Shown here: positions 31,701 to 37,700 of the stretch, piece after piece | Layout of the letters: each line of letters starts with the position of its first letter | Position numbering within the stretch: position 1 is the stretch's first letter | DNA from: Oculina patagonica | Lineage: Eukaryota | Direction of reading: 5' to 3' | NCBI RefSeq assembly: GCF_052425735.1 | Contig: NC_135760.1 | Span: 8,990,001 to 9,054,000 of the forward strand | DNA length: 64,000 bases | The notes under the pieces: generated by a model | Databases searched by the model: none | Told to the model about the DNA's origin: nothing | Seen by the model: the letters and a program-made list of their open reading frames with translations, nothing else | Made by a program: the position numbers and the translations under genes

Positions 31701-34700
31701 TTTCCTGCCGAGATAACACAGAAAAAATATTCACATTCTGCGCTTTGTGATTTCTCATCCGATCAAAAGAAAAACCAAAGCCAATCGTGACCCGCTCGCG
31801 CACTCTTTTCCGCCTTTCGCGAGGCTACATGTATCTGCTTCGAGTTTAAATTGGTTCACTTAAGTAATTGTGACCTTTGTGATTGATCAGAGTGACTACT
31901 TTGGGTCTGATTTTACGACACTCAATTAAAAACTGCTCTATAGAATAGAGTTCAAAAGTACTCACCCTTTGTTTTTCGAAATCCATTCTTACTGCATTTC
32001 TGTTTACAATGATGCTTCCTGCGTTACCTGAGAAAAAAACATAATGAGAACAGTCGTCAGATAACCTTTTTTCAACTGGACATTCCCTGCGCAACCAGTC
32101 TATGCCAATATCACATTGGCTGGTGCATGACACTCCAACTGATCGAATTATCTTTATCGCAATAAAATTATTACGTCTATTTTGTTTTCATTGATGTAAA
32201 ATTAATTAAGTGCAACTTACCAACGATAGTAGCAAACATGAAAACACCGGTTAAGTAGCAAGCGATAGTATAAACATATCTGAAACAACAGGCAAGAAAA
32301 ACAAAATTACAGTTAAACACAGAGAGTTGTACATGTTTTGTAAAGCAGTAGTTTTTTTGCTAAATTTGTGTTACAAAGTTCTAAGGCAAGATCGGACTGT
32401 TGTAAAACCAAAAGTGACAACAACATCGACACATTTGTGTGTCAAAAATATTTCGCGTTTACTTTAGTTTTACATTACTTCGCTTAATGATTGGTTTAAA
32501 AAGCTCGCGCTACTTTCTCAACCCATCAGAAGTAAAACCAAAACCGATCGTGACTCGCTCGCGTATGTTTTCCCGCGCCAGTTTTCGCGCAGGCTACATG
32601 TATATGTTACGAGTTTTGATTGGTTTACTGCATTGTCTGCGCTCTTTGTGATTGGCCAGAGTGATTACTTTGGTTTTAATTCTAGGACTCTCCAGTAAAA
32701 ACTGCTCTATTCTGTTGTGTTATAACCTAGGGGACTGGGGAGGAGCACATGGTCTAGCTATCCAACATGGCGTAGTCGACATCGAGTTGTGCGGCCATTT
32801 TTCAATCTGCTCGCCGATCGCTATCGATCATAGACGTTAGAAGCTTCATTTCTTCGCTCTAGGGGCGACGTTTGTCTCAACTATAAAGGAAATGCCACCC
32901 AAGCCAATTCCAAAACCCTCCGAGGGGGCCAGTGCGAGTCCAACAACAACATCTGGACCAAACCTTCAATTTATTTCTTCTGAAATTGCACGAGTGCCGA
33001 AGCTTGATATTGCAACCTCTACTCCAGACGGATTCCAAATTTGGAAGCAGCGATGGAACTCTGCAGTGACAATTACAGCTTTCTCCGATCTTCCTAGAGA
33101 AACCCAACAAGCTCTATTTACAAACGTCCTGAGCGATGACACCGTTAAAAGAATGAACATCTTAGGGCTACAAGATGTCAATGCTATCATTGAGTCTTTC
33201 CAAACCCAGGTATGTGGAAGTACAAGTATCTTTGTTCATGAATACGAGTTTCACAACAGGTCCCAAGGGACAAATGAGTCTTTTGAAGAGTTTTACATTG
33301 ATTTACAGTCCCTGTTGAATAAGTGCCAGTATGAAGATTGTTGCAAGACTGAAACTAGAATGTCATGTAAAGAGCGTGTTCTTCTTGCAAGATTAGTGGC
33401 TGGCATAAGGTCCAATGAGGTTCGTAAGAGTCTTCTGTGTATTAAAGATCTAACCCTCGAGAAAGCTGTTCAACATGTTCAAGTTGATGAAGCCACTTCA
33501 TTTCAAGCAAACCAATTTTCTTCTCAAATAAACAAAACTGGTGCTTCTGCCTACAGAAAAGGCAAATCAAGCAATAACTCTGACAACAGCAATGCACCTC
33601 CTTCTGACATGTCAGAAGACAGCCCTAGGAAATGCAAATTCTGTATGAGGTTCCATGTATTCCGAAAGGAATTATGCCCTGCAAAAGATTCTATTTGCAA
33701 AGCCTGCAACACCAAAGGCCACTGGGCCAAATCCCTCATGTGTCCCAATAATTCTAAGACTGGTCCAAAGCGACCCAGCGAGGATAGGAAATCAGATGCT
33801 CATGCAGCACAGCCTGGCTCCTCTGGAAATCCTTCTCTTCAATTGATTTCAGCTGATGGAAAGTCTCAAATAAGCCACACTGCATCTGTTAAAACTATCA
33901 ACCTTTCTGCTATTCCTAGTGTTGGAACTCACTGCTATGCTGACTTTGTTATTGGCAATCACAACTGGATTCAGCAGTGCATGGTTGATCCTGGTGCCAA
34001 TATAAACTGTGTTGGTTATGACTGGATCACTCGTTTTGAAACTCCTGAATGGAACTATAACCTAGAGTGTGGTTCCGTTAAAGCTGCTGGTGGTCACAAC
34101 CTTAAAGTTGAAGCACGCGTACTTCTGAAGATTTCCTGGCCCCCAGAAGACCCAGTTCTCTCAGCTAGCCAATGGTTCCACATTATCCACGGTGAGGATG
34201 GAGTTGTCCTTGGCACTCCTGCTTGTCGAGCTCTTGGTGTCATAGATGACCAGTGGCCATTGTCTACTTTGGAAGAAAAAGTCAACCCCTCTTCTTCAAC
34301 TGTAAAAACACTGCAGGCAGACCCTGCCCAGTCTTTACCTGGCAGCACATTACAGGACCAACTACACTCTGACGCCAACAATTTTGAGTCTCTACCTCCG
34401 CCTCCAGATGATGACCTGTTGTCTCACTTGAACTGGATGCACCATGCAGCAGATGACGTACAAGTAAATGTGATTGGAACCTCTTCAGAGCCAACCATCG
34501 CCGAGAGTTCAGAAGACTCTGATTTTTCATCCCTCTTACACGATTATGAAGACATCTTTGATGAGACTTTTCTTCCTGCCATGTCAGGTGAACCATTTAA
34601 GATCAATCTCAAGCCCAATGCTACACCCTATGCTCAGTTAAAGGCAAGAAAAGTTCCAATCCCTTACTTGGAGCAACTGAAGAAACAACTTCAGGAGATG

Positions 34701-37700
34701 GAGCAACTTGGAGTAATCTCACCATGCGAAGAACCCAGCCCATGGTGTCACCCAATCGTAATAGCCCCGAAGAAGGGCACTGATGAACTCAGAATTTGCA
34801 TTGATTTCACTCGCTTGAATAAATTTATTCAGCGTGAATATCATCTCAGTAACTCTCCTTTTGAAGCTGTAACCAGCATTCCTCAAGAGGAGCTTGCATA
34901 CTTCTGCAAGTTTGATGCTCGCCATGGTTACTGGCAAGTTCCACTTCATGCTGAATCACGTCCTCTCACCTGCTTTATTACACCATTTGGTCGATTTGTG
35001 TGTAATCGAGCTGCATTTGGAATTAACAGCATCTCTGAATGGTACAACCGCCGCATGGACAAGGTCGTTGCTGGCCTGGAAGGAGTTCGCAAAATCGTTG
35101 ATGACATTCTGATCTATGCACCAAGTCTGTCTATTCTGAAGATGCGCACCTGTGCCTTCCTTGATCACTGTCGTCAGCATGGTGTCACGCTCAAACAAAC
35201 AAAGTCGCAGCTTGCCGTTACAGAAGTCGAGTTTGGTGGATTTCGTCTGACGAAAACTGGCATCCAGACCAGTCCTGACCTACTAAAATCTATCAGGGAT
35301 TTTCCTCGCCCACAAAACCTCACCGATCTCCGCTCATGGTTTGGGTTAGTAAACCAGCTTGGCAATTTCTCCAAGGAACTCACTGCAATTATGGCACCCT
35401 TCCGCCCTCTTCTTGCAAAGGATACAGTGTTCCAATGGTTGCCTGAACATGAACATGCCTTCCTGGAAGCGAAATCTCGCCTGAGTTCCACTCCTGTGCT
35501 AACATACTTCGCTGTTAACCAACCAACTATTCTTGCTACTGATGCATCTCGTCTCAAGGGACTGGGTTTCGTCCTCCTACAATTGGTAGATGATGTCTGG
35601 AAACCAATACAAGCAGGTTCACGCTTCTTGACTCCTGCAGAAAGCCGCTATGCTATGATAGAACTTGAGGCTCTTGCTGCCTGCTGGGCAATGAAGAAAT
35701 GCAACATGTTTGTTCAGGGTTTACCACACTTCACCCTTCTTACTGACCATCAGCCTTTCATCCCAATACTGAATTCTAAGGGAATTGCAGATGTCGAGAA
35801 TCCCAGACTCCAGCGACTTATGATGAAGATGCTGCCATATTCGTTCACTGCAGAATGGGTGAAAGGCAAGGATCATTTGGCTGCAGACGCTCTTTCTCGT
35901 TTCCCAGTGGATGAGCCATCACTCGATGATGAGCTATGTAACATTCATGCTGAAGCAGCTGTAAAGATCCAATTTGCTGATAAGTCAACTGAAGACCTAC
36001 AACTTCATGAAGTTTTTCAAGCTCAGCAGACAGACCCTCAGATTTCTCAAGTTACAGAGTACATCAATTGTGGATGGCCTAAATCACTAGAAGAAGTAGC
36101 AACAGTTGCAAAACCTTTCTGGCCTATCCGTCACAACCTTTACCTCGTTGCACCAACCACTGGCAGATCTATTCTTGTAATGAATGGACGAACTGTTATT
36201 CCATCCTCTCTACAAAAGAAGATGCTTTTGGTTCTGCATGAAGGGCATCAAGGTGTTGATAAAACTCGCCGCCGTGCCCGTGCTTCCATCTATTGGCCTG
36301 GCATAGATCGCGAAATCGAAGACATGGTGAAACGATGCCACCAGTGTCTGACACATCTTCCAGTAAATTCTAAAGAACCACTGGAGCAGCCACCAATACC
36401 AACAAGACCTTGGGAGAAGCTAGGTGTTGACCTATTTAGCCTCGATGGAAATGAGTACCTCATTACCACCGACTATTTCTCCTTTTTCACTGAAGTGCAT
36501 GATCTAAAGAAGAACAGTAAGGCGCCATTAGTGATCAAGGAACTGAAGAAGACTTTTTCGCGCTTTGGAACACCTGTGGAAGTAGTCTCTGACGGTGGCT
36601 CTCAGTTCACGTGTAAGGCCTTTGAAGATTTCTCACAAGAGTGGGGTTTCCAACACACTGTGTCATCACCTACACATGCGCAGTCAAATGGCAAAGCTGA
36701 GGCAGCCGTAAAAAATGTCAAAAAGCTACTCAAGAAGTGTGGATCAATGAATCATGATGAATTTTGGAAAGGTATGTTAGCAATCCGCAACACTCCACTT
36801 GCCTGTGGGAAGAGTCCAGCTGAGTTGTTATTTGGCAGAGCACTGCATGACTTTCTTCCTCGAGTCCCAAACCCTAAGGAAGAATTTCTAACTCCCACCA
36901 CAAGGAAGAAAATCCTACATGCCAAGAGTAAGGAGAAACTCTACTATGATAAACATACCAAAGTACTACCTCCTCTAGAACTAGGATCCCGTGTCGCAAT
37001 TCGCTCTCGCAATGACACTGACTGGTCCCTTCTTGGGACTGTTATTGAAATTAGACCAAACCGTACCTTTGCTGTCGAAACTGACCGTGGTTCGGTGCTC
37101 ATCCGCAACAGAAAGTACCTGAAGCTCACAATCTGACAATGTGCCTTTTCTACATGTTTGCGTTCCTTTTTTATTATCTCCTAAAGAGGGAGGGAGATGT
37201 TGTACGTTCTCTGATCTCCTCCTGTCGGGGGAGGGAGATGTTGTGTTATAACCTAGGGGACTGGGGAGGAGCACATGGTCTAGCTATCCAACATATTCCG
37301 ATTTTGCGTTTGCGTTCAAGTTTTTTTTAACAAATATGTCAATACGCGTGAACATCGTTGAAGCGAGGGCAATCTGCCGTCTTGGTTATAGACTAATAAA
37401 AGACATCAAATACGCCTGCGTATTCTTACGTTCCTTGGGCTTGCTTTAGACCGTGATACAGGTTTCACTTTCAGGAGAATTCGATTTACAGCCTTTACAA
37501 TACAGAAACGGTTTAATTATAAGTGAAGCGTAAGAAAACAATTCGGAAAATGTTAATTGCCTTGAAAAGGAATCTTTCATAATCCTTATTCGAACAAATG
37601 CCAGTGTTTATATATAGCTTTTAAATAAAAGTGTGGGAGTCCACCAATTTTCAGTTAAGTAGTTTTGACAAAGATAAAAATGTCTGAACAAAACACATAT

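Follow-up and report, generated by a model that had tools for sequence, protein, structure and literature searches.

Why should a retrotransposon carry, 41 bp apart, two copies of the signal at which the edge of its long terminal repeat (LTR) is set, and does it use both of them? This question is raised by a 4,581-bp Ty3/gypsy-type LTR retrotransposon of coral that lies within the 64,000-nucleotide stretch of Oculina patagonica DNA analyzed here (positions 8,990,001 to 9,054,000 of contig NC_135760.1, hereafter the window), and in which a polypurine tract (PPT) joined directly to the sequence TGTTGT is found shortly before, and again at, the point where the 3′ LTR begins. A first-pass annotation of this DNA had proposed that both tracts set LTR edges, such that one RNA could give rise to progeny with 96-bp and with 55-bp LTRs and duplication of the tract could shorten the LTR stepwise. 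That interpretation is partly supported when taken as a whole, although its central model is largely refuted for the present assembly and we regard it as very improbable. We favor, tentatively and at somewhat less than an even chance, the reading that the stretch around the two tracts serves a very young Ty3/gypsy-type element as its plus-strand priming region, with one of its signals doubled, and that within it the upstream tract acts as a second LTR-proximal origin of plus-strand DNA and possibly as a displacement primer. Coordinates below are window positions unless a genomic locus is named, and the features of the element lie on the plus strand.

The doubled signal is sharply defined. A 16-nt core, GGGAGGGAGA followed by TGTTGT (that is, GGGAGGGAGATGTTGT), occurs exactly twice, at 37188-37203 and 37229-37244, with the two starts 41 bp apart, just as the first-pass annotation had described; no third match was found in the 64-kb window when up to two mismatches were allowed. 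The chance expectation for such a core is 0.04 matches, and none of 100 dinucleotide shuffles reached two. The two tracts are the longest purine runs in the element, the upstream one (PPT1) being 15 nt long (37183-37197) and ending in GGGAGGGAGA, and the downstream one (PPT2) being 12 nt long (37227-37238) and abutting the 3′ LTR both in this sequence and in the other copies. PPT1 lies 47 nt 3′ of the stop codon and runs into the upstream TGTTGT (37198-37203), a mimic of the LTR start; the open reading frame (ORF) holds no further copy of the core. Each core is preceded by a pyrimidine arm of the form ATCTCC(T), which reads ATCTCCT at 37176-37182 and ATCTCCTCC at 37214-37222. The two arms are offset by a 3-nt indel, and as a result the repeat finder gives the pair of modules as 26 nt at 85% (family D17). 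Outside the core, direct reading of the sequence shows the putative 41-bp duplicated unit to be only ~56% alike.

Which of the two modules defines the LTR is answered first by the element itself and then by its copies. The 5′ LTR (32713-32767; 55 bp, TG...CA, repeat family D7) and the 3′ LTR (37239-37293) are 100% identical, and both are flanked by the same target-site duplication (TSD), TATTC, at 32708-32712 and 37294-37298, which bears out the earlier statement that only the downstream TGTTGT is the present LTR edge. Because the edge lies there in every integrated copy, PPT2 is the working primer. The distance from the upstream TGTTGT to the end of the LTR (37198-37293) is indeed 96 bp, and priming at PPT1 followed by transfer would logically give an LTR of that length; moreover, since PPT1 precedes the same TGTTGT, a DNA end formed there would look acceptable to integrase, and the junction in a rearranged copy described below is compatible with priming at this tract. 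However, the genome holds no product of this kind. The upstream 21-mer (TGTTGTACG...) has 18 matches in the 529-Mb genome, accounted for by 16 full copies, one decayed relative (L018) and the rearranged copy, and all of them stand in 3′ context. No 96-bp LTR was recovered by whole-genome pattern and similarity searches, and none of the ~21 5′ LTRs begins upstream. Wherever the flank of a 5′ LTR could be read, the LTR begins at the downstream TGTTGT and its 5-bp TSDs match; the remaining ones, judged by a query match that begins only at the downstream edge, bring the total to ~21 of 21. Genome-wide, the LTR core has 37 matches, all explained as pairs or truncated copies; there is no solo LTR among them, and the search that the first-pass annotation had suggested, for copies or solo LTRs starting at the upstream module with 5-bp TSDs, found none. 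A lone 55-bp LTR (L024; G000:C12:3824589-3824644) does not count as a solo LTR: after it come only TGGCG of the primer site and then unrelated sequence, and no TSD matches, which marks it as a truncated or aberrant insertion.

It is also informative to ask how long the LTRs are in related elements, given the proposal that duplication of the tract acts as a ratchet on LTR length. An integrase search returned more than 1,000 candidate relatives in the genome, many with intact ORFs of 1,300-1,435 aa. They represent an extensive radiation of related gypsy elements that have a single ORF and very short LTRs; we sampled these matches as three sister families (loci L067-L079). In sister family B, a single tract (AGAGGGGAGA followed by TGTCATG) precedes an LTR of 56 bp, the limits of which are the points of divergence among nine copies. 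Sister family C, the nearest (integrase identity 44-48%), has a 128-bp LTR behind a single tract, with limits inferred from the coordinates of 5′-LTR matches. The LTR of family C starts with TGTTGTGTTA, the same sequence as in the downstream module of the window element, so that the downstream edge is ancestral; its 3′ untranslated region carries TGTTGTAAGTTTTC, 12/14 identical to the upstream TGTTGTACGTTCTC of the window element, with no purine tract before it. As the sampled sister families lack the twin arrangement, it is not needed for tiny LTRs. Judging from these sequences, tiny LTRs are a trait of the clade, and the difference in LTR length lies in the body and 3′ part of the LTR and did not come about through a shifted 5′ edge. 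This removes PPT duplication as the explanation of the 55-bp LTR, and the proposed ratchet is not supported. In one sister family the 56-bp LTR was seen to contain a TATA-like box and an AATAAA, with only 7 nt from the AATAAA to the LTR end.

The first-pass annotation had named two findings that together would count against it, and these parted company: no LTR of the family begins at the upstream TGTTGT, but the duplication is not private to the window copy. Both modules are present letter for letter in 16 of 16 full copies in the genome, the 3′ ends of which are 99-100% identical, and the 33 genome-wide occurrences of the 16-mer core correspond to two per full copy and one in the rearranged copy. 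The integrase protein is 100% identical across 15 copies, and matching 5-bp TSDs were found in seven copies beyond the window element. Three metagenome contigs (L080, L083 and L084) add a ~96.5% variant; their flanks differ, pointing to separate insertions in other coral samples, and both modules are kept, with a T>C change at 37182 and a purine-to-purine G>A change at 37231, the sole change in PPT2. The decayed relative L018 (~87%) likewise retains both TGTTGT sites and both tracts. Compared with the window element, it is 87-88% identical in coding sequence, 101/108 from the stop codon to the LTR, and 49% in the LTR body.

One further copy departs from this uniformity in a way that touches directly on how the element is reverse transcribed. 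The rearranged copy (G000:C8:14525240-14525858; hereafter the C8 copy) is integrated, with an intact TSD, ATTAC. It consists of a 55-bp LTR; the 18 nt TGGCGTAGTCGGCAGGAT; an inverted segment of 453 bp, window 36049 to 35597, at 99.8% identity; and window 37199/37200 to 37293, comprising spacer, PPT2 and LTR. Every junction shares a single base. The 18-nt segment complements the final 15 nt of tRNA-Ser(AGA) and the added CCA without a mismatch, whereas the normal primer binding site (TGGCGTAGTCG, 32768-32778) is complementary to the 3′ end of that tRNA for 11 nt only, positions 12-18 being unmatched; a 15-mer of the tRNA copy is found in the genome only in tRNA genes and in the C8 copy. Eighteen nucleotides is the classical endpoint of retroviral strong-stop DNA before the modified A58. 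All full copies retain ACATCGA at primer-site positions 12-18, where a tRNA copy would read GCAGGAT, and hence the tRNA copy is normally not inherited. The exact 18-nt complement, set against the 11-nt match of the primer site, indicates that the C8 copy arose during reverse transcription on PPT2-primed, tRNA-copying strong-stop DNA. We considered inversion and deletion after integration and rejected this origin, because such events cannot supply the four or five bases, foreign to the parental element, by which the tRNA-Ser complement is made whole. The second notable junction of the C8 copy falls 1-2 nt from the edge of PPT1, for which we estimate a chance of ~0.3% (three free breakpoints, +/-2 nt, 4,581 bp), and this placement suggests that the tract was recognized during reverse transcription.

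What, then, might the upstream tract do? Under the reading we favor, PPT1 would be a second RNase H-resistant primer near the LTR. A plus strand started there would run through PPT2 and the LTR and, remaining on the minus strand, would form the right-end plus strand, and en route it would peel off the strong-stop DNA primed at PPT2, the whole amounting to a hard-wired version of what has been proposed for Ty1 and Ty3, namely repeated priming with displacement. PPT1 would set no LTR edge, such that neither 96-bp LTR progeny nor a ratchet would follow. We regard PPT1 as a candidate primer because it shares with the proven primer 10 nt of the tract and the 6 nt beyond the cleavage site, and no purine run of the element is longer; because the core is unchanged between the two modules although the remainder of the duplicated unit is not; because all 16 full copies, the ~96.5% variant and L018 have retained both modules; and because the C8 copy breaks so close to the PPT1 edge. 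A narrower proposal can also be put forward, in which PPT1 would be a dedicated displacement primer: in an element with an 11-nt tRNA match and a 55-bp LTR, the first strong-stop DNA, with 18 nt of tRNA-Ser copied, would be a dead end, the PPT1 strand would strip the PPT2-primed strong-stop DNA off the minus strand for transfer, and the C8 copy would be a fossil joining the dead-end product to a PPT1-primed strand. We consider this narrower proposal unlikely.

The main rival holds that a ~41-bp tandem duplication, taking in the PPT and the first bases of the LTR, occurred in the 3′ untranslated region of the founder and has been carried along as a neutral passenger, with PPT1 unused or its products lost. 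We think this doubtful, yet it has much in its favor, and several of the same observations weigh against a function for PPT1. The burst that produced these copies is very recent, as the identity of the integrase proteins and of the 3′ ends attests, and in so young a family nothing about selection can be read from the likeness of the copies. In the ~96.5% variant the modules change at the element's average rate, their 2 changes in 69 nt making them no better conserved than the element as a whole. In L018, PPT1 itself shows drift in the form of a (GGA)n expansion and of a pyrimidine (T) at position -2 relative to TGTTGT. The arrangement is, furthermore, unique to this family: a genome scan for two units of a purine run plus ATGTTGT, 10-40 nt apart, found no family besides that of the window element, and among the more than 1,000 integrase matches, as sampled through the three sister families, the twin arrangement at this spacing was seen in no other family. 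Efficient priming at the natural PPT is also described as preventing the transfer of internally started strands (Bowman et al. 1996, as reported in PMC2829016). Finally, the C8 evidence comes from one rearranged copy only, and its junction could equally mark pausing of reverse transcriptase at the base of the 37176-37198 hairpin, or chance. What the passenger account does not readily accommodate is that the 16-nt core has remained identical though the remainder of the unit has diverged to ~56%, that in the comparison with L018 conservation of the 3′ untranslated region is no lower than that of the coding sequence, and that the C8 copy breaks at the PPT1 edge.

The hairpin just mentioned leads to a different view of the modules, in which they would act as RNA or minus-strand DNA structures, for example as a pause or termination site or as a packaging or dimerization signal, and the likeness to a PPT would be a by-product. 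The first-pass annotation had noted that ATCTCC can fold against GGAGAT in each copy, and both hairpins do form: the upstream arm can pair with GGAGAT at 37193-37198 in an 8-bp hairpin of -8.6 kcal/mol, and the downstream hairpin reaches -15.9 kcal/mol. Nonetheless, neither is clearly better than composition-matched shuffles (z -1.3 and -1.9), of which 24/200 and 9/200, respectively, fold equally well, and any purine tract beside a pyrimidine tract will pair. L018 carries a compensatory change in the downstream hairpin (37221 C>T with 37231 G>A) that keeps the pair in the register of the first-pass annotation, the ~96.5% variant representing a one-sided intermediate; however, a single such pair in three distinct sequences falls short of significance, as 312/500 shuffles equal it, and we take it as no more than a hint. 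A pause at the base of the upstream hairpin (between 37198 and 37199) would also account for the C8 junction. Taking these points together, we judge a structural role of this kind to be quite improbable.

The remaining features of the element agree with its assignment. Its single ORF (32892-37136; 1,414 aa) contains, in order, reverse transcriptase (RVT_1, aa 626-786), RNase H (RT_RNaseH, aa 849-983), the integrase zinc-binding domain (Integrase_H2C2, aa 1103-1154) and the integrase core (rve, aa 1190-1261), as identified by domain matches. It is this order of reverse transcriptase, RNase H and integrase, together with TG...CA repeats, a short TSD, and a primer binding site and PPT beside the LTRs, that marks it as Ty3/gypsy-type. 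With regard to the finer placement, the Mag A group has the LTR-start motif TGTTRKR (Table 3 of PMC3601003), and the LTR start of the element, TGTTGTG, fits it; we treat a place in the Mag lineage of Ty3/gypsy, which is characterized by short LTRs and a single ORF, as a lead only. The primer binding site is the sole match of at least 9 nt between tRNA-Ser(AGA) and the element, and tRNA-Ser(AGA) genes cluster on the element's own chromosome. A bipartite primer site like that of Ty3, with a second tRNA-Ser contact in the 3′ region, was considered and rejected, there being no exact match of at least 9 nt beyond the primer binding site and the duplex energies being unremarkable. Just 5′ of the element, at 32610-32677, lies a short repeat of very high copy number, with a summed contig word depth of ~15,000 as compared with ~23 for the element; it sits within a direct repeat of ~765 bp that is present in two copies (families D4 and D6; 31751-32710).

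Several other sequences bear on the recent history of the family. The read data enter this analysis as assembled contigs only. Contigs from runs labeled as two other organisms (X10 and X13) carry the element with 3 differences in ~4.5 kb, and coral metagenome and metatranscriptome data contain a 96.5-98% variant with a 6-nt insertion after 37156, the ~98% variant occurring in coral RNA libraries; such near-identity across samples reflects either very recent activity among close relatives or shared ancestry. In one coral RNA library, a contig of 265 nt (run X17, record 25) joins 37157-37238 to 32713-32893, giving the order 3′ untranslated region, PPT1, PPT2, one LTR, primer site and leader. A one-LTR circle could give such a contig, as could a tandem pair with a shared LTR or simply a collapse of the 55-bp repeat in the assembly graph. 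An unusual integrated copy (L038; G000:C1:3591487-3593213, minus strand) has the TSD ATGCG and near-intact 55-bp LTRs and is only 1,721 bp long. It is a near-perfect ordered subsequence of the 4,581-bp element (1,720/1,721 bases, against ~1,619 for shuffles), which means that it differs from the element only by hundreds of small deletions. These deletions take ~80% of A and G as against ~47% of C and T, proportions that depend on the alignment, and leave the interior CT-rich; this single copy represents an aberrant cDNA or else an artifact of the assembly or the reads. As a deletion-only derivative of the same sequence, it (L019/L038) was rejected as an independent relative conserving both tracts.

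It is worth considering the doubled tract in light of other elements in which a second PPT is present. Lentiviral central PPTs and PPT2 of the yeast element Ty1 are additional plus-strand origins that define no LTR; they lie kilobases upstream, in pol or integrase, and create a central flap or discontinuity. The arrangement described here is like these in that the sequence of the 3′ PPT is present a second time, and unlike them in that 41 bp separate the second tract, which is in the 3′ untranslated region, from the working one. A plus-strand start at this tract is a candidate only, hinted at by the C8 junction at 37199/37200.

A closer parallel is offered by plants. Sireviruses, which are Ty1/copia elements, have clusters of identical PPTs upstream of the 3′ LTR, whose role is described as unknown, and Athila4 and Calypso, which are Ty3/gypsy elements, have one extra linker PPT (PMC2829016). 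As in all of these, exact PPT copies lie here near the 3′ LTR, too close together for kinetic competition, and only the terminal one sets the edge; the two cores, 41 bp apart, are identical PPT copies within 0.5 kb of the 3′ LTR, as in a cluster of the Sirevirus type. The present case differs in its coral host, in its gypsy order of pol domains and in having a single extra copy, 41 bp away. Furthermore, the upstream PPTs of Sireviruses are without attachment site and inverted repeat (PMC2829016), whereas PPT1 has both, in the form of TGTTGT and of its own arm. Extra PPTs beside a 3′ LTR are thus known from plant Sireviruses and a few gypsy elements, and the coral element provides a simple natural case in which the upstream tract is accompanied by a full copy of the LTR start. 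Retroviral vectors built with two PPTs are also relevant: transfer from the upstream PPT, which lengthens the LTR, was rare, and the natural PPT won (Bowman, Pathak and Hu 1996, as cited in PMC2829016). There the second tract was engineered, whereas here it is natural and fixed in the family.

The comparison with Ty1 and Ty3 bears on what PPT1 may do. The Ty3 LTR also begins with TGTTGT. The tract of Ty3 reads GAGAGAGAGGAAGA (PMC3185511). Ty1 and Ty3 progeny do not inherit the extension derived from the tRNA: a first strong-stop DNA that includes tRNA sequence comes to a dead end and is displaced by re-priming, and a PPT recycling model of plus-strand transfer has been put forward (Lauermann and Boeke 1994, 1997, as summarized in PMC5371799). 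The coral element resembles them in its short primer site, of 11 nt, and in that element sequence, and not a tRNA copy, is inherited beyond it; the C8 copy provides evidence here of tRNA-copying strong-stop DNA, unable to complete a normal transfer. The lengths copied differ, 18 nt of tRNA-Ser here as compared with 12 nt of initiator tRNA-Met in Ty3 (PMC5371799). A further difference is that in Ty1 and Ty3 one PPT is proposed to fire repeatedly, whereas here a second tract could bring about the displacement. The C8 fossil records the priming tRNA, the length of it that was copied and a strand break at the upstream tract, and the family, being young and apparently transcribed, makes it testable whether a second LTR-proximal tract serves in displacement or transfer rather than in setting an edge. 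If the displacement-primer reading is true, this coral element would represent a hard-wired, two-tract version of the PPT recycling proposed for Ty1 and Ty3.

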